A stretch of 64,000 nucleotides of DNA, from contig OZ218963.1 in the NCBI GenBank assembly GCA_965112735.1, forward strand, positions 1,674,001 through 1,738,000, read 5' to 3'. The position numbers and the translations under genes are program-made. Below are positions 625-19,397 of the stretch, one piece after another. Numbering within the stretch: position 1 is the first letter of the stretch; each line of letters opens with the position of its first letter. Below the pieces are notes generated by a model. It was not told the origin of the DNA. It did not search any database and was given only the letters and a program-made list of their open reading frames with translations. This DNA comes from Phaeosaccion multiseriatum (Eukaryota > Protista > Ochrophyta, other classes).

Positions 625-1267
625 AGGTAAGCTTCTAAGTAGCACACTGCGTGGGAAGTGTGCTTCTAAGCTGGTGCGCTGTGTAACCAACCCGTGGCTT
701 CTTTGTTAGGCATATGCTAGAGTACTACCGGGCTCTGCGGACCCGAGTAGGCCAACTGGCGCCAGCGATAGCAGGTAGCACGTCAGGGGTAGAGTGTAGT
801 CAGAGTGTAGGGGAGACTTGCCTTCAGAGCCACGGCAGTGGGGGCCCACGTGTACTTGTACGTGTCCGATCCAGCGTTGGTGGAAAGAGTGTGCCACGAA
901 CATTCAGCTACGCTTCGATAGCGTTAAAGAGTAGCGACAGCCACGGAGCGAATGCAGGCTGAACCCCCACTATGACTAAGCAAATGTATTGTTTGTCGTC
1001 TCGATGAGGCTGGAGGCCTTACCCCTCACCCCCTTTGGTGGGTTTCGTCCCTCAAGTTTGTTCTCCAAAAGAGGGCTGCCGATGTGGTAGGGAGGTTGGG
1101 ACTACGGCCTAAAGAATCCCTTCCTCCCCTACCAGAAATTAAGGAAATTGCAAGAAACTTGCCCCCCTCTCTTGCTCTTCTCTGCATTGTGTCTCTAAAT
1201 CACATCAGTAAATAATGTTGTAGTTAAATATCTTATCTTCCCGGTCCGTTATCCATAAAAGAAGGGT

Positions 1268-1984
1268 TCACTTCTTTTCGGCAGACTTTTTATCGTAGTG
1301 CTGCTTCACCAGGGAGTAGCCCAGTGTGCCCAAGACTGTGTTGCGTTAGGAGCAGGGAGGAAGAAGCAAAGCACGTGGGGTGAGAGGAGTGAGAGTAAGT
1401 CAGAACGATGGAACTGATCGCCGAGCTCATGTTAGATGAGGCTGTCTCCACGTGGTGAGGTGGGCGGTGTCAAGTCATACAAAGCCACACTACCCCACGA
1501 AAGGGATGAAGCGAATACACTGGAGGACCGATTGGTCTCGATACGAAGGGCAATGAAGCTATAAAGGGACGCGACGGACTGACAGCAGAGGCAGCTGAGT
1601 GGCGTGACAAACTCACAAGATAAAAAAATCGCCCCAAGATAGTGGACTTTAGACACAGAGAAACACTCGCTAAGAGTTTGAGAGTCAACGATCAGCAGCA
1701 CCACTTACTGGCGATGGTGGAGCCTGCAATGGAGAGAGGTGACATGGGTGTACGGAAGGCCACGACTGCCGACACGATGATGACCACACGCTTGATGGTG
1801 TTGCCCACCGCGTGAGTCACGGGATCCACTTTGCCCAGGCAAAGGAAGGCGACTTCGTTGTACAGGTAGTAGAAGAGGCCTGTGGGACAAAGGACGAAAC
1901 CGGGAAACAGAGTGGTTGGTTAGTGGCCAAGGCAGGCTGTCAATTGGAGAGGGGAAAAAATATGAGAGAGAGGGAGGGATAGCA

Positions 1985-2021
<37 letters not shown>

Positions 2022-3851
2022 GCAGCCTAGCGGTAGGGAATACGTACCACTGGCGAAGGCTGAAGTGGCGAGGTACTTCTTAGTGGCACCGGCAGCTAGC
2101 GCCATCTCCCACGTCTTCTTGAACTTGGGCCCCTCAATGAGGAGGGCGGCCGGCGAGAGCATCAGGCAGGCGATGATGGTGAGGACCGCATACCTTCGAG
2201 AAGAGGAAGAGGAGGAGGAGGAGGAGGAGGAGGGGGACAGCGGCAGGGAGTAGACAGGGAGAGAGAAAGAAACGGGACATGGCGTCAGGGGTGGTAGGCT
2301 CCTCACTCGCACACCAACCAACCACGCCTCTGCTGCTGACCGCCGTCAAAGGACAAGGACTATTGTATCAAGTGAAGAGAAACCCCAGGGGCACTCCTGG
2401 GGCGAGCTTAGGGCCACTGCAGAGTCAGCAATGTAAGCCTCCCGACGCGAACCGATCCCTCTCTCATGATACGCTACTCATACGCTACTCACAGGTTGGC
2501 AGAGTCCATGTTCTCCCCCACGGGTTGGCCCATCATCTTCTTGCCGAAGACTCCTCTGAGGGCCGACCCCGTATTTGAGCCCATCGCATTGCCAAAGGCC
2601 ATCCAGCTGAAGGATAGCTCCTTCATGGACGCCAGCCCGACTCCGGCAATGACGGGCAGGAGCGACAAGTAAACCGGAAGGGCCAACACCTTGAGGAGCG
2701 AGAGGGCCGAGAGAGCCCGCGTTTGGGAGCGATTCGGGGCATCACAAGAACAGCAAAAGAGAGACAAAGAAATCACGCAGGAAGTTCATTGAGGAGATTA
2801 GCTCGCACGCAAGTAGTCGAGGGAAGCAGAGAAGGACCAACCCCCCTCTTTTGGACCGAAACTCACCTGTCCCAGCAAGACAGCCCCAAACGCCGCAGTG
2901 AAGACGGGCTCGGCTGCCTTCACAATGTGCGTAAACGAGACGGCACCAGCCCCGAGCGAGAGCACGGCGCAGATATGGGCCAGCGTGTGAAAGAAGGCCA
3001 AGACACTCAATTTCTTCGTCGCTCCTTCCTGTCAGAACCGATCAGGAGACAGGTGAGGACGAAGAAGTCGAGGAAGAGGTATGCACGGGCCGGTAGGCGA
3101 GAGGCGTGTCTGACAGGCACCCCCCCGGCCTGGACAGAGATTAACACACGTCGGGGCGAGCAATCATAGCAGCGGCACAGTCGTCCTTCCTTCACCATGC
3201 TCCCAACCGAAACGGGGGGAGCAGAGTCATCTGCAGGACAAACGTGACTTTCGCCCAGTCGTTGGGACTAGCGAAGAAGAAGAAGAACAGCAACAATAGC
3301 AAGAAAGTCGTCCGAAATTGCTAATGACTCACCGCAAGCTTGGGGCTCTTGCGCAGACCCACTATCCATTGTGGCACCACCCACAAGATGCCAGTAAAGA
3401 GCTGCAGAGAGGCCATCAGCCAGGGCAGGGGCAGCACGTTCAGCACCCGCTTGTTATAGATGTTATAGCCAATGTTGAGCAGATACCACATGGAGAAATA
3501 CAGCCCAATCTTGAGCGTTTCTACCGAGCCGCTCTTGGCTGCTGGTGCCTCACTGGACCCGCTGGCGCTCAACGCTGACGTGCCAGTGGCAGGTAGAGGC
3601 GACGATATTGTGGAGCTGCTTGTCTCGGATACCACTTTCAAGCCTTGATGGAGGCGTCCGTTCCTACCGCCAATGACTGGGAGGCTGAGGGCCATTGCGG
3701 TTGTACTATGGGAGGTGCTGCTTGCGGTTGAGCTCCTTGCTGTTGGTCGTAAAGCAAAGGAAGACTGCCCTGGGGCGACACATTGGAAAGCATTCACGCC
3801 GCCGCTGCTGCTGGCGAGCAATATCGCCGCCAAGCAAGAGACTGCCCTCAT
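1268..3851 (-). CDS. Plastid triose-phosphate/phosphate translocator (pPT/TPT family), multi-exon
   Basis: ATG at 3851 starts a signal peptide and VNA-F cleavage motif. Exons encode WYLLNIGYNIYNKRVL, SFTHIVKAAEPVF, GVGLASMKELSF...AMGSN and YNEVAFLCLGKVDPVTHAVGNTIKRVVII. The last exon is LGTLGYSLVKQHYDKKSAEKK* (TGA 1268-1270). Introns are GT-AG. Confidence 0.93.
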
Positions 3852-10707: not shown

Positions 10708-13584
10708 ATGCGATTTTTCCTTCCCAGGCGGGCCTGCGGGCTCGCTGTCGCTCTTCTGGGCGTTTGCTCCATGCTCGGAGGAGGCCTCCCCACCGCGACT
10801 GCCACCGCGCCTACCCCTGCACCCACGGATGATTTGGTACGTGTATCGGCGTAGTTAACGGCGTCCTCTTGCTCGCCGCGTCGGCCGGGGCGGGGCCCTG
10901 CCTGACCACTCGTTCCTTCAACGAAATGCGATGCGCCCTGCCTTTACGCCTCGCTCCGAAAGCTCCTTCAATGGAATGCGTTGCGCCATCTCGTTGAAGC
11001 TCATACACATTCCTTCCATCGTCCCTTTCCCTCCTCCCACCCTTCACAGGATACGTTTTTTGCAATCCTGAGCGGGCTCGGTATTATCGAGATTCTCAGG
11101 GATTTCATAGGGCTCAGACAACGACGCCTGGTCATTGGCGATCAAGCCCCCGCCGAGCTCTTCAATACCATGCTCGGGATTGTGGAGGACGCCGCCCTGA
11201 CGGGTGGCGCCGATGCCAACGCCTTAACCACCACCGTGTTAACCTACACCCTGGTGGAGGTTGCGGGAACCAACCCTGACGCCATCACCTACGAACTGTC
11301 ATACACTGTTGGCCTCCTTCTGGAGGTCGGCAATAACGCGGTGTTGGATGACATCGCCGTGACCGTTTCTGCGGAAGTGGTGGAGGGTGCCGAGGAGGCT
11401 GATATCGACATTGACGACGTGGTGACCGTCGCCGCTCTTTCCCCGACTCCCGCCCCCCTCGGAGATGTCACGGAGGCACCCACGGAGGGACCTACTGAGG
11501 GCCCAACTGACGGACCCACAGATGGACCTACTGAGGGCCCAACTGACGGACCCACAGATGGACCTACAGATGGACCTACTGACGGACCCACCGATGGACC
11601 TACTGATGGACCTACTGACGGGCCCACCGATGGACCAACTGACGGACCCACCGATGGACCCACTGACGGACCCACAGATGGACCTACTGATGGACCTACT
11701 GACGGACCCACCGATGGACCTACTGATGGACCTACTGACGGGCCCACCGATGGACCAACTGACGGACCCACCGATGGACCCACTGATGGACCCACAGATG
11801 GACCCACCGATGGACCCACTGATGGACCCACTGACGGACCCACCGATGGACCCACTGACGGACCCACAGATGGACCCACCGATGGACCCACTGACGGACC
11901 CACCGATGGACCTACTGACGGGCCTACTGACGTGAGTGAAGGAGGGTTTTTTTTTTTTTGAGTGAGTAAGTAGGCAGAGCGTGCTGGCTCGCTAGTTAAT
12001 TGGTTAGTGAGGGAGTACTTAGCCAGGGAAAGAGATTTATTGTGAGGGAGGCGTGAACCACCAACCCTGCAGCTACCAACGGAAAGGTTAGGTGTCATTT
12101 CATCCCCATCATACGCTTTCACGTTTCTCACCACGCCGACTCGTTTCTCTCTTCGCTTGTTCTCCTAACATTCGCAGCCACCAACGGACGTGCCAACTCC
12201 CGCCCCTGTGTGCCCCCCTGCGCCTAGCGCGGCGTGCGTGGACTGCCAGGCCCTCTGCGCCGCGCAGGGAGGCACTTGCTTCATCGACCCGGACTGCGAA
12301 ACCAAGCAGGGCGGCCTTGGCTGCAACTTGTTTGGCATTCAGGACTGCCGCGGCTGTGGTGGGAACGGCGGCTTCGCCAGCATCACGTGCGGTGCTTGCC
12401 CCATGGAGCCACCTGCTGAGTGTGAGACCGCTGCACCCGTGCCCGCCCCTACCATGGCGCCATCGATGGCTCCCACAATGACGCCCGTCGCACCTACTCC
12501 GGTCCCCGTCGCACCGACTCCTGTTCCCGTCGCACCAACTCCGGTTCCCGTCGCACCCACTCCAGTTCCTGTGGCCCCTACTACGGCGCCCGTCACACCC
12601 GACGCAAGCGATGCATGCTCTACCCTGTGCGCTACGGTGCACCCTGGAGCTGGCCCGTGCTTCACCGACCCCACGTGCCCCAGCGGAGGACCCTTCGGAG
12701 GCCTGGGCTGTAACGCCCACGGGGAAACGAACTGTAGATTCTGTGGAAGCGGTAACCACCCGGACTGCCCCTCGGCCCCGGCCCCCACGCCTGTTCCCGT
12801 CGCACCTACTCCTGTCCCCGTCGCACCGACTCCGGTTCCCGTCGCACCTACTCCAGTTCCTGTGGCCCCTACCACGGCGCCCGTGGCACCCGACACCAGC
12901 GATGCATGCTCGACCCTGTGCGCTACGGTGCACCCTGGCGCTGGCCCGTGCTTCACCGACCCCACGTGCCCCGGTGGAAACCCCCTCGGAGGCATTGGAT
13001 GCAACGCCCACGGGGAAACGAACTGTAGATTCTGTGGAAGCGGAAACCTCCCCGACTGCCCCTCGGCCCCGGCGCCCACCCCAACGCCTGTGGCCCCTTC
13101 TCCGGTAACTTCCGCGCCCGTGGCCCCCACCCCGGTAACTTCGGCGCCCGTGGCACCCGACACCAGCGATGCATGCTCGACTCTGTGTGCTACGGTGCAC
13201 CCTGGCGCTGGCCCGTGCTTCACCGACCCCACGTGCCCCGGTGGAAACCCTCTCGGAGGCATTGGGTGCAACGCCCACGGGGAAGCGAACTGTAGATTCT
13301 GTGGAAGCGGAAACCTCCCCGACTGCCCCTCGGCCCCAGCGCCCACCCCCACCCCTGTGGCCCCTTCTCCGGTGACTTCGGCGCCAGTCACACCTGACGC
13401 CACCGATGCGTGCAGCAACTACTGCGCTGACTTCTGGCCCGGCAACGTTGCCTGCTACACCGACCCTGCCTGCGTTAACGGTGGCCAAGGTTGCGATGCC
13501 CACATAGGAGTGAGGACGGGCACACGGTTTGAGGCACTCCAATGCCGCTTCTGCGGCACTGCTCCGTACGCGGCCTGCCCTTAG
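10708..13584 (+). CDS. Secreted/cell-surface mucin-like protein with (GPTD)n repeat and five Cys-rich repeat domains
   Basis: Exon 1 (10708-10836) encodes MRFFLPRRACGLAVALLGVCSMLGGGLPTA, signal-peptide-like. Exon 2 is 11050-11931 and exon 3 is 12178-13584. The GT-AG introns join in frame. Confidence 0.85.
11476..11931 (+). repeat. Coding 12-bp tandem repeat, ~38 x G-P-T-D/E
   Basis: GGACC(C/T/A)AC(T/C/A)GA(T/C) units varying mostly at third codon positions. Confidence 0.95.
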
Positions 13585-14377: not shown

Positions 14378-14625
14378 ATGGAGGCACTTTGGCGTGGGGG
14401 GTGGGAGGGAGGGCCCTCCGGGCCGAAAGACACACCCATACGTAAGACCGCATGGCCCTTAACGTGGTGTGGCCCTTACGTAGGGAACGGGAGTTTCAGT
14501 TTGTTAGGCCTCTACACGCTGCAGGGGAGAGCACTGTCCGCCATTGGATAGGGCATTGATCTCTTCTGCTCTCGGTTCCTCGTCTTGTTGCTCGAGGCCA
14601 CGAAAAGAAAAGACTCAAGAGTCTT

Positions 14626-14801
14626 TTCTTCTTCTTCTTCTTCTTCTTCTTCTTCTTCTTCTTCTTCTTCTTCTTCTTCTTCTTCTTCTTCTTCTTCTTC
14701 TTCTTCTTCTTCTTCTTCTTCTTCTTCTTCTTCTTCTTCTTCTTCTTCTTCTTCTTCTTCTTCTTCTTCTTCTTCTTCTTCTTCTTCTTCTTCTTCTTCT
14801 T
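14626..14801 (+). repeat. (TTC)n microsatellite, ~58 units
   Basis: Directly visible pure repeat. Confidence 0.98.
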
Positions 14802-15037
14802 GACTGAGACTGCGTGAGCAGCACACAAGGACACGTGCACTCAACTGAGTCCTCACATTGTCCTCGGCCGATTGTCCTTCCTCGCCGCCTTGAGTGAGGT
14901 TGGAACTGAAACTCTCTCTAACATACTGAAACTGTTGGTTGCCTTTGCACTGCCTCCCTCCCAACTTGCTCTGAGTCCCTCCGCCCCTCATCCCTCTGAC
15001 CGGAGCCTGTGCGTGCGCTGCAGCCCTCCTATCCCTC

Positions 15038-15300: not shown

Positions 15301-15464
15301 ACTGGGGAGAAAGGGTCGGAAAGCGACCCTTCAACAACTGTTATTTGAAAAAGCTCTCCTTGCGGGGTCAAGGATGAAAGAAGGAAAGGGGATGAGCGAA
15401 AAAAACTAGCCTGCCCCCCTCGTGGGAGAAGAGGGAAACTTGAATCTATTGATGACCGGTTTTG

Positions 15465-16075
15465 GTGGGGCGAGATGCCCCACTCGGTGAAAGTGGGTAT
15501 TTTTAGTACCCAATTTTTTTAAAAGTGGGTATTTTTAGTACAGTACCCAATATGGACCAGTAGCGCCCCCTCCCCCCCCCCCTCCTTTTTGGTGTATCTC
15601 TCCCCTCCTCCTCCAAAATATACTACGCTATGATATGACGATTTAATGGTATTACCACGATAACAATGGTATTCATATTTACAGACACACTTAGTGTCCG
15701 TCCTCAATCATGCATGGCATACAGTAGTAGTCAAAATCGCCTTCCGCAAAACCCTTGCTGTCGCAAAACTCGACGGTGCACATGTGGTGCACGAGGTTTC
15801 CACACGCTCTTTCGGATGGGCAGAGGAACAGCTTGACTTGCGAGGGCTTAGTACAGCCATACGAGCATGTGAAGGCCATGTCTCCCTCTCTCAAGCCGCC
15901 CAACGACGGCGCTGCTGACGCGGCAGCAGCGGCAGTAGCGGCCGCAGCGGCCGCATCAGAGGCAGCAGCAGAAGCAGCATCAGAAGCAGTACCAGTACCA
16001 GTACGCTGTTTTTTTTGGGCCCCCCTTCCCCCACCCCTTCCTCCTCGTCCTCCTCCGGCTCCGCCTCCTCCTGTT

Positions 16076-16109
<34 letters not shown>

Positions 16110-19021
16110 TGCTGCTGCCACCTCCTCCTCGTCGTCCTCTGCACCGCTATCACCTCCATCCCCCTCCTTCGACTCGTCTGCACCAGTGCCACTTTCCTTC
16201 GCCCTCGCCCGCTTCGCCCGTTTTTTCGCGTCCGCCTGCTGCGCGCTCCATAAATTATACACGGTGGTCCACACCAGCTGATTGAAGCGGCGCTTGTGAG
16301 AATCAGAACGAGACTTGATGTCAAAGGCGTCTTTGACTGCGTCAAACATGCTTCGCGCTTCTTCAAGCGTCGGCTTGTCCTTCCAGAGCCCCTTTTCTTT
16401 CGCCGCGGATTCAATCGCACCCATCAAACAGCAAAATTTTGACATCCTTCGCTTCTCCGCCCTCCCCTGCACGTCTGCTGTCGTGAATTCTCGAAGGCGA
16501 GGAGTGCCTGTCATCCAAGCATCCCAAGCAGCGCGCACAGTGAAGCTAGGGACCTCAAAGTGCTCGGGAAGGGTATGCCACCGGCCGTTGTAGAGATACA
16601 GAGGTGGCTGATCTGCACCTGCACAAGAAGAAGAGGGCGGGGCGCTGCTCGAACCCTCACCAAGGCCCAGAGTGCCTGCCTGGTGAGCCGCGAAAAGGTC
16701 GCTGAGCCCACTCTTAGAAAAGGCTGCGTCGAGGGTCGTCTGCAGGGCCCTGCTCACACCCAGACTGGTGACAGTGCCAGAGGCCTGTGCATTCTCCTCC
16801 AGAACGTCACGGATCAGCGTCTCCAAGTCGACCTTGATCGTCTGGCCCAACACCTCAAGCTTGCCGCCTAGAGAGGCCACGCTGTCCGCCACGACTTGGA
16901 ATTGCCTCAGCTGCACGACGTGGGGAGGAATCCCGGTTGCAGAAATCTCGTCCGTCTCGTCCGGATACTTCAGCACGACATGCTCTGAAAGGTCCGCCAG
17001 CAACCCTTTGATCTCGGAAGAGCTGTGTCGTGAAAAGAGGGTGATTCTCCTGAAGAGTGCTGCGCAGAAAGCCGGCGTGGTACACCACACTGGCAAGACA
17101 GAATTCAGCCACCTTCCTCAATCTCAGCGGCACGTCCCTGAAGCAGCTCACAATGGCTCCCGCGAGCACGTCTTCAATGCCCTCCTTCGCTGTGCCGTCC
17201 ACCTTGAGGCGCTGAAAAAAGGGAGGAAGCAATGCAAACTCCTTCGCTGAGATGTTCGCGCCGGAGGCAGCCCGGCCCACATACTGATCTGCTGCATTGA
17301 TGGGGTTGAAGTAGATGCCCTGCACGCCGGGAAGAGACCATCCCATTCGAAGTTGCACAGCAATTGGGTTGGGAGCAGCGGACGAGCCGCTTGTGACGTG
17401 CGAGGCAGCGCCCTTGCGCCCAGAATGAGTGCCGAGGTCCTCTGGAGTCAGCCCCATGCCTTCCAAAATGGACGAGTTCGCCGCCGCCGTACGTCTGAGG
17501 AAGCCGCAATACCTATCGTACTGATTGTTGCCAGCGAACAGCGCGTTCTTCTCAAAACCAAAGCTCAGGAGGTAAACACCAAGCGCGAGGACGGGGCAGA
17601 TCTCCGGCATGATTGGATTCGCGTAGACGTGGCGAGGATGTCGGGCCTTCTCTCCCAGCTGATCGCCCTTTTGCTTCCCAAAATAGACGCAGAGCGCGTC
17701 CCCCTTCCACTCGAGATGATCGAGACAAATCTCCACACAGTTGGTGGCGCGGCACATCAGATTCCAGGAGAGAACGAGGAAGGGGTGGCCAAAGGCGCCC
17801 TGTCTGTGCCCGTTCTCACAGACTGCCGAGCTCAGCATTGCTGCGATGTACACAAGCGAAGGAAACAGTGGCAACCAAAGACGGCGTCAGGGCTAGGAAG
17901 TGAGTGGGGGGCATTCAATGCATCAGCCACTTGTCTCCACCCACTCCACTAGTTTCCACTGTCCACTGACTCCACACAGCTGGGAATTTACCTTTGGCAA
18001 GAGCGCGGTAGAGAGCGAACGGCATGGGAGCCTTCCCTTCTCTGACTTCGACATTTCCCTCCTGCTTCTCTCCTGCGATCGTCCTCTTCAGCCCCTTGGT
18101 CAGCGTCGCAAGGTCGCTTTGCAATTTGCGGTGCTGTTCCTCCTGATGGTAGTCTCTGTACAGATTGAAGAGTGCAGAGCGTTTCGACTGTGCACCGGCC
18201 TTGGATAAGCCCTTCGGCCCCTTCTTGACTTCAAGCAGCCACCCGAAGAACGCGTCGGCTGTCAGCAGATGGAACAGCAAAGGGTGCGGCGCCCGAGGTG
18301 CTTGGATCAAGTGTGCCTTCACCCGCTTCGTCCACTGCGCCTCAGCCTTCTTCTTGGCCTTTGCTTGGGCTTTCGCTGCTCTCGACACCTCAGCCGGCGT
18401 CTGCTGTGCCGCTGCAGTGGCACCACCCGCTCCGCCAGGTGCGGCGGCTGCTGCGGCTGCTGCTGCTCTCCTCTGTGCTTCCTCCTCTTCCCCATCTTCC
18501 CCGTCTTCCTCCTCTTCCCCTTCCGGTGGAGCAAATGCTGTCCTGAAGTCAGGGTCCAGAAGCTCCGGGTGCTTGCGGAAGAGGTATCGGATCAGCATGG
18601 TGGAGGCGCATGCATATCCACTTCTCGAGCGTGGGGCGATGGTGTTGTTTCGGAGGTTCTGAATCTGCTGCTGCTCTGCAGTAAGCGGTGCTTCTTCCCC
18701 CTCTGCTGCTGGTGCTTCCGGAACCGTAGCAACAGCGACGTCAGCCATGGTATGCTCTGTTCTCCTGCAAATTCACGTGGGAGATGCCCCTCCCACCACT
18801 GGCATCAGCTGTTACAGCCGGGTATCGTCCGCGCAGCCGCTGCTCCTCTTACATAGCTGCCCTGTGCAAATATGCTGATGCTGTGAATGAATAAAAATCC
18901 ATGTGGGGAGGGGGGGGAGAATGCCCCACAACCAAAAAATATTGGATAAAAAACTTGAAAAACGAGCATTTGTGGCCCATAAAATATCCAAAACCATAAT
19001 TTCGTGGGGCAGGTGCCCCAC
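15465..19021 (-). mobile_element. Crypton-type (CryptonS-like) tyrosine-recombinase transposon; boundaries provisional
   Basis: Encodes a tyrosine recombinase protein and is bracketed by similar palindromes GTGGGGC-N4/5-GCCCCAC at 15465-15483 and 19004-19021. Subterminal regions are AT-rich, with a tandem AAAGTGGGTATTTTTAGTAC repeat at ~15490-15541. Confidence 0.8.
15691..18748 (-). CDS. Crypton tyrosine recombinase with GCR1_C-like region and C-terminal PHD-like finger; one intron, two apparent 1-nt frameshifts
   Basis: ATG at 18748 and intron 17841-17991 (GT-AG, in frame). YR motifs are WNLMCR, KQKGDQ, RHVYANP...CPVLAL, GTHSGRKGAA, RMGWS and GIYF. Downstream are ATGIPPH, WHTLPEHFEVP...AWDAW and WTTVYN. 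The terminal segment is CSYGC...CPSERAC...HHMC...CMPC. Frame breaks occur at ~17008 and near the A8 run at ~16009-16016. Confidence 0.85.
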
Positions 19022-19397
19022 ATCACGGTACTATTAGACATACGGACTACAGAGAACTTGGGATATGTTTAAAGATATGTTGCCTCTCAATCAAAGGAGG
19101 AGGAGGAGGAGGAGGAGGAGGCCTCTTTCCTCTTTTATCACGCAACCCCTCTGCTCTCTATGGAGCTGCGTGGGTGAGGCCTACCTGGACATTGTCGCCG
19201 GTGATGATGAAGAGGACGGCAAAGAAGCAAGAGCAAGGAGAGCGGCCGGGCTCGCGGGGCACGAGGAGCTTACTAGAAAGGCAGCTCGGAGAGATACATG
19301 AGACAGACCAGAGAAGAGACGAACAGCCGCCTATAGTGCTCACAGACTCCACGTACTCTTTGTAAATATTTACAGCACTTTCAAGGAAGTGTTCAGT

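Follow-up and report, generated by a model that had tools for sequence, protein, structure and literature searches.

The present study concerns a 3.6-kb repeat in a 64,000-nt stretch of the genome of the ochrophyte Phaeosaccion multiseriatum (contig OZ218963.1, positions 1,674,001 to 1,738,000; hereafter the window, from whose first letter all coordinates are counted). Positions 15446-19059 probably hold a young copy of a very high-copy Crypton, a DNA transposon with a tyrosine recombinase, whose reading frame is broken twice here and whose intact gene ends in a tail with a C4HC3 order of cysteines and histidine. The intact gene would consist of two exons encoding about 970 amino acids (aa). 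From the N-terminus, the predicted protein has a SAM-like arm, a recombinase domain of the Cre/Flp/Ndc10 type with the residues R-K-H-R-W-Y, a conserved C-terminal domain that is probably DNA-binding in this family, a putatively disordered linker (basic, then acidic, then Ala-rich), and the C4HC3 module. The module is 55-60 aa long and lineage-specific, and two zinc ions are most likely bound to it in a cross-brace, as in fingers of the PHD/RING type. We infer that a run of nine A (A9) in the linker is the coding state, which intact copies would read straight through, and that the run of eight (A8) found here would be a slippage mutation, either recurrent or inherited. This copy would then yield a truncated recombinase and be mobile only with enzyme supplied in trans by intact copies. 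More speculatively, the acidic module may tether the recombinase to histone tails or another chromatin protein and thereby bias integration. The parts of the element are as follows (ORF, open reading frame; contigs and depths refer to sequencing runs X1, X4, X5 and X6).

15446-19059, minus strand: whole Crypton repeat unit, ~3.6 kb, with approximate boundaries drawn from contig divergence points and word depth
17992-18748, minus strand: exon 1, with its ATG at 18748, in ORF 17915-18748; N-terminal region with a weak SAM-like (core-binding) signal
17841-17991, minus strand: intron of 151 nt, GTAAAT...GCAG; a contig joint links 17992 to 17840 in X5 (depth 2337) and in X6
17007-17840, minus strand: exon 2, tyrosine-recombinase catalytic domain, assigned from relatives, conserved residues and an AlphaFold model
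17004-17006, minus strand: first frame break, GGG here and GG in other copies
16227-17003, minus strand: conserved C-terminal domain of the recombinase, off-frame relative to the catalytic exon in this copy
16017-16226, minus strand: low-complexity linker, basic (KKRAKRARAK) and then acidic, with an 11-unit CTG repeat at 16076-16108
16009-16016, minus strand: second frame break, the A8 run, where the 0 frame reads A_AAA_AAC
15880-16008, minus strand: Ala/Ser/Thr/Gly-rich linker in the finger frame; the frame of ORF 15891-17096 is a Leu-rich string here
15694-15879, minus strand: C4HC3 zinc-finger-like module of 62 aa, with a ligand span of 15712-15867 and the stop TAA at 15693-15691

The assignment of the gene to the Crypton-type tyrosine recombinases, which a first-pass annotation of the window had made from the letters alone, is supported by relatives, catalytic hexad and fold matches. 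The catalytic ORF (16855-17874) has 85 related proteins, with a best expectation value (E) of 3e-75 and 45-49% identity, from Phytophthora species, Phaeothamnion and metagenomes; some of them bear the name Ndc10-domain or Tyr-recombinase-domain protein. Across 20 aligned sequences, R42, K69, H150, R153, W179 and Y188 (numbered in this ORF) were invariant or more than 90% conserved. The W-to-Y spacing of 9 and the H-to-R spacing of 3 are those of Cre. An AlphaFold model of the catalytic domain built on this alignment reached a predicted local distance difference test score (pLDDT) of 75.5, and the best 48 of the 50 top Foldseek matches to it in the PDB were Ndc10, Flp, XerH, Cre and XerA, each match being weak on its own (best E 0.015, template modeling score 0.46) and the set unanimous. 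A search of PDB sequences with the profile of the recombinase family gave chance matches only.

The regions on both sides of the catalytic domain extend this picture. In exon 1 the Pfam family Phage_int_SAM_4 matched with an E of 0.058 here and of 2e-5 in relatives, which align to residues 140-255 of the N-terminal ORF; an exact protein look-up of the 277-aa exon-1 product gave no record. The joint between the exons shows GT..AG on the gene strand (CT..AC on the plus strand), and removal of the intron brings the N-terminal ORF into the frame of the catalytic ORF. Downstream, BLASTP aligned 35 relatives over residues 31-282 of ORF 15891-17096, and the order of the parts is conserved. A protein word search with the 401-aa ORF gave no match, probably because low-complexity words swamped the query. 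The first-pass label of a GCR1_C-like region here kept part of its force: the Pfam family GCR1_C (PF12550) was absent from this copy and from 19 relatives, and the language-model features of the Atlas placed the domain nearest to oomycete clusters (score 0.92) and next to clusters with GCR1_C-bearing members (0.90 and 0.86, with 188 and 185 shared features; 20% and 94% of the members carry GCR1_C). A distant relationship of the C-terminal domain to GCR1_C is plausible from these features. The closest Logan relative (L001) also has a frame change where the catalytic part meets the C-terminal domain; in its region 962-3030 the two (962-2383 and 2380-3030) are called as separate genes with a 4-nt overlap.

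The contigs of other copies delimit the element and show how abundant it is. They stop agreeing with the window at 15444-15446 and at 19058-19060, where they have loose ends, and this divergence at both ends gives a unit length of ~3.6 kb. The recombinase gene is the only gene inside this unit. Word depth inside the element exceeds 2000 in run X1 and is far higher in X4; the element family is of very high copy number.

Several sequence features stand near the ends of the unit. Near-identical palindromes (GTGGGGC, a spacer of 4-5 nt, GCCCCAC) lie at 15465-15482 and 19004-19021, about 20 and 40 nt inward from the mapped ends, a layout that is expected of binding sites for a tyrosine recombinase. 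The 3' subterminal region also contains a 20-nt exact direct repeat, AAAGTGGGTATTTTTAGTAC, at 15490-15509 and 15522-15541, 32 nt apart, which is a possible accessory protein-binding site. The motif AAGTT at the 5' start of the element (19055-19059) recurs at 15437-15441, 4 nt past the mapped 3' end; provided that the true 3' end is 15442, the two occurrences may correspond to the short direct repeat with which Cryptons typically end.

The reading frames connect the module with the recombinase. The frame of the module is that of the catalytic ORF 16855-17874, with 330 codons between them offset. From ATG to TAA the spliced length is 2907 nt, a multiple of three, and the two homopolymer changes, a gain of one base at 17004-17006 and the A8 run, cancel each other in total length. 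At the first break, one base at 17004 is absent in all of the depth of X1 and X5. ORF 15891-17096, which the first-pass annotation took as the main frame, is indeed open through the domain downstream of the catalytic part; it is itself offset by one base at 17004-17006 from the catalytic ORF, which it overlaps. At the second break, the annotation was right that an A8 run separates the frames and that one more A would give GPKKKQR. The run has exactly eight A. ORF 15891-17096 reads it as G-G-P-K-K-N-S and ends at the stop 15893-15891; with one A added, translation would pass over into the finger frame by way of G-P-K-K-K-Q-R. The second open frame that it described, ending at 15691, likewise exists: after two stops at 16152-16147 there are 151 open codons from 16146 to the TAA at 15693-15691. 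With two frame breaks in the assembled copy, the fused protein cannot be made and the product would stop at 16855, past the catalytic domain; a recombinase fused to the finger is thus ruled out for this locus as assembled. The copy looks like a defective member of its family. Microsatellites neighbouring the A-run also vary. An intron inside the linker, considered as another way of joining the frames, had no contig joint there, which is weak evidence in a repeat-masked region.

The module itself has a non-random pattern of cysteines and histidines. It reads C-x3-C-x10-C-x5-C-x4-H-x2-C-x18-C-x2-C, with the motifs CSYGC, CPSERAC, HHMC and CMPC. The ligands stand at residues 5, 9, 20, 26, 31, 34, 53 and 56 of the 62, a spare Cys at 39, and there are eight Cys and three His in total. 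The C4-H-C3 order claimed for the end of the tail is therefore present in the last 62 aa, and a six-frame search of the 64-kb window with a relaxed, stop-free C4HC3 pattern found this one site. The relaxed pattern had 0 matches in 20 shuffles of the window and occurred in 3.7e-4 of the shuffles of the tail. A strict pattern with the spacing of PHD fingers (C-x2-C, 9-21, C-x2-4-C, 4-5, H-x2-C, 12-46, C-x2-C) had no match in the window. Within that range fall the x10, the x4, the H-x2-C, the x18 and the final C-x2-C of the module, which also has a strand-like hydrophobic K-L-F-L ahead of the third Cys and an aromatic residue two positions before the seventh. The nearest Atlas clusters were all PHD (0.90, with 164 shared features, just below the mark of 170). 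When PHD families were excluded, the best score was 0.78, the next nearest clusters were still of the PHD clan, and RING and UBR followed. A Cys/His module with the PHD-type order of ligands thus stands behind the recombinase, in a frame that is not random. From its ligand spacing and language-model features, the module is putatively a PHD-like finger of the C4HC3 cross-brace type; this fold is a lead only.

The module did not turn up in the relatives and sequence collections searched. The 35 relatives with the whole C-terminal domain end at most ~30 aa past it, in a search limited to proteins of up to 593 aa. In three loci of relatives (L001-L003) the other three parts are collinear, and the module was missing both by tblastn (E up to 10) and by the six-frame pattern. 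Compared by phmmer with 1.84 billion representative proteins, whatever their length, the 70-aa tail had two matches, both repeat proteins with chance agreement in Cys and Gly, and a scan of JGI metagenome contigs for the tail gave 201 pattern matches, with 0 confirmed. Missing from relatives and from representative proteins, the linker and module are, by these comparisons, a lineage-specific addition with no detectable source.

The behaviour of run X5 suggests that the gene is transcribed through the module. Depth in X5 is 2300-3200 over the exons, 226 in the intron and 170-360 at both ends of the element, so that intron and ends stand at about 10% of the exon depth, and the spliced form is present at full depth. 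With this pattern X5 behaves as an RNA library. Its contigs cross the finger region, where the depth is 1435 (15648-15895) against 2300-3200 upstream, in agreement with transcription through the module; if X5 is RNA, transcripts would run through the finger region and beyond its stop. Over 15644-15952, the X1 and X5 contigs differ from the window at 0-1 positions. Within the 186 nt of the module, the sole difference among copies is a Met/Lys change at 15719, which gives C-K-P-C in X1 and X4 and C-M-P-C in the window and X5 and keeps all ligands. Lys makes up 87-100% of the depth at this position in the contigs of sample S1 (X1 and X4), and X5, from a different sample, has Met only; the two samples thus seem to be dominated by different subfamilies.

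Several observations weigh against this interpretation and keep our confidence in it at a moderate level. Concerning the fold, the first ligand pair (x3) and the second (x5) are both outside the usual PHD range. The profile search and the structure prediction of the tail, both proposed at first pass as checks on the finger, came out negative: no Pfam family, PHD included, matched the 63-aa or the 70-aa tail at E up to 10, and a single-sequence AlphaFold model of the module had a pLDDT of 44 and no usable fold, the lack of homologues leaving no alignment to build it on. Nor did a sequence search with the tail find a PHD-finger chain in the PDB at E up to 10. The name PHD finger, as first given to the tail, accordingly keeps its footing in ligand order, spacing and Atlas score, and lost it in Pfam, PDB sequence and model confidence. 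Concerning the frames, GG at 17004 accounts for only 44% of the depth in X4, whose contigs are short, and the contig comparison with other copies covered the element outside 15953-16145, a stretch that is masked as repeat and includes the A-run. Concerning expression, the library label of X5 is "DNA?", and its RNA status comes from the depth pattern.

The alternative that fares best accepts a real, fused module and gives it another task. It would bind the ends of the element as in piggyBac, multimerise, or bind a host protein, rather than read histones; we regard this as possible, though doubtful. A Cys/His order by itself does not fix the ligand, and the palindromic sites and the 20-nt subterminal direct repeat need recognition by some part of the protein. 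The C-terminal cysteine-rich domain of piggyBac sets a precedent: it is a cross-brace finger of PHD-like form, and it binds to a motif repeated in the ends of the transposon (PMC8086355). More generally, the transposases piggyBac and PiggyMac/Tpb2 end in a small PHD-like domain with two zinc ions in a cross-brace, as is predicted for the present recombinase, and modules of this type contact transposon-end DNA or histone H3 tails, depending on the family (PMC8086355). The enzyme in piggyBac differs, being a DDE transposase, as does the Cys/His arrangement, and we detected no sequence similarity with the module. Charge speaks against end binding. The module is acidic, with an isoelectric point of 5.0 and a net charge of about -4, whereas the DNA-binding piggyBac domain is positively charged; the PiggyMac domain, which is negatively charged and has another fold than that of piggyBac, is without DNA binding and binds the H3 tail weakly (PMC8086355). 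By analogy with this family, the acidity argues against direct DNA binding, and the charge may be compatible with a partner that is basic, for instance a histone tail. For contacts with DNA, moreover, two other parts of the recombinase are already available, its N-terminal arm and its conserved C-terminal domain.

It is also conceivable, and in our judgement unlikely, that both breaks are errors in homopolymer length made in assembly or polishing, and that the real copy is intact and encodes the fused protein. Both differences are one-base homopolymer changes (GG/GGG and A8/A9) that compensate each other, and polishing is error-prone in a repeat with a depth above 2000. On the other hand, a G run of three bases is an unlikely site for such an error in this copy. 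Compared with the majority contigs, it is further set apart by substitutions of its own at 16694 and 18101 and lacks one AAG unit, part of an in-frame Ser repeat, behind 16624. These differences mark it as a genuinely distinct, slightly diverged copy.

Functional use of the A8 run appears quite improbable. Here a -1 ribosomal slip on A_AAA_AAC, or polymerase slippage, would yield a short recombinase with its stop at 15891 together with a longer zinc-finger form. The run is in phase a canonical X_XXY_YYZ heptamer from which a -1 shift lands exactly in the finger frame, and the 0 frame and finger frame share ~125 nt, an arrangement that recoded genes are known to have. Against this, the usual distance of 5-9 nt holds no stimulatory structure and the only strong hairpin starts ~43 nt downstream, the fold z-score downstream of the A-run being only -2.05, in GC-rich repeat sequence. 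The continuation of the 0 frame is a Leu-rich string derived from Ala-type repeats, an implausible protein end, and a further shift in the same copy, at 17004, is plainly disabling. Still a little more improbable is the version in which the A8 run acts as a recoding switch that doses recombinase with and without a histone-binding PHD-like finger. Least probable of all, and very much so, is that the Cys/His ORF is no part of the recombinase and stays open by accident as a 3' untranslated region or a captured fragment: in this copy the frame before it does not lead into it, and it has no homologue among representative proteins and no Pfam match, but its Cys/His pattern is far beyond chance, it lies in the frame of the catalytic exon once both shifts are counted, and one Met/Lys change is its only copy difference in 186 nt, with the ligands intact.

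Taken as a Crypton with a C4HC3 tail in its intact gene, the family can be compared with described systems. The parts listed for described Cryptons are the tyrosine recombinase, GCR1_C, DDE, C48 peptidase and helix-turn-helix parts, and a zinc finger is not among them (PMC3212892). Full-text searches of the literature turned up no Crypton with a zinc finger, PHD-like or other, which agrees with the suggestion at first pass that the architecture may be new among described Cryptons. CryptonS lacks GCR1_C and has a conserved C-terminal region, and Ndc10 is derived from Cryptons (Kojima and Jurka 2011, PMC3212892). The likeness to CryptonS and the oomycete CryptonF lies in a single tyrosine recombinase gene, a conserved C-terminal region and, probably, short end repeats and the lack of long terminal repeats (PMC3212892), and the Cryptons of oomycetes and stramenopiles have the N-terminal arm, the catalytic domain and the C-terminal domain in the same order as here. 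Unlike described Cryptons, the present family has the long disordered linker and the C4HC3 module, which are missing in the relatives retrieved, as well as an intron and palindromic subterminal sites. Lineage-specific C-terminal PHD fingers do occur on the enzymes of other DNA transposons, namely Ginger1-9_HM, where the finger is accompanied by a Ulp1 protease domain, and some Mutator transposases (PMC2836005). Those enzymes are of the DDE type, and their fingers match the SMART/Pfam PHD profile (PMC2836005), whereas the module here has no Pfam match. Overall, judged from its sequence, the family appears to be a Crypton with a novel zinc-finger-like tail and not a new kind of system.

Other features of the window lie outside the element. 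A GAA/TTC microsatellite of ~70 units (14590-14810) is found 650 nt from the 3' end of the element, and GAG/CTC repeats (19095-19121) adjoin its 5' end. Farther away, the ORF at 12190-13584 on the plus strand encodes 464 aa with four copies of a Cys-rich module (C-S-T-L-C-A-T-V-H-P-G-A-G-P-C-F-T-D-P-T-C ... N-C-R-F-C-G-S-G-N) between Pro/Thr/Val-rich linkers; its predicted product looks like a secreted or cell-wall repeat protein.

To our knowledge, no class of eukaryotic DNA transposons is less well understood than the Cryptons, and we know of no account of how they choose their targets. Crypton activity was first directly observed in 2023, in Chlamydomonas (PMC9977147). The broken copy described here matters less than its family, for which it supplies the intron and frame structure of the gene. 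A young, apparently transcribed, very high-copy family with a putative two-zinc module is a case in which the coupling of a site-specific recombinase to a chromatin- or protein-binding domain can be tested. In the RAG2 PHD finger and the chromodomain integrases of chromoviruses, a reader of histone marks coupled to a recombinase or integrase biases cutting or insertion; there, the reader fold and the histone binding are established by experiment, and here the fold is putative and the histone binding hypothetical. Chromatin-guided integration through the module, the mechanism proposed at first pass, is speculative. Were the recoding switch true, such integration would be dosed, and, as far as we know, neither a recoding event nor a chromatin-reader module would have a precedent in a DNA transposon with a tyrosine recombinase. 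Should histone tails prove to be its ligand, the module would offer, in an unrelated class of enzymes, a natural counterpart of the RAG2 PHD finger and the chromodomain integrases, and may provide a possible template for guided recombinases.

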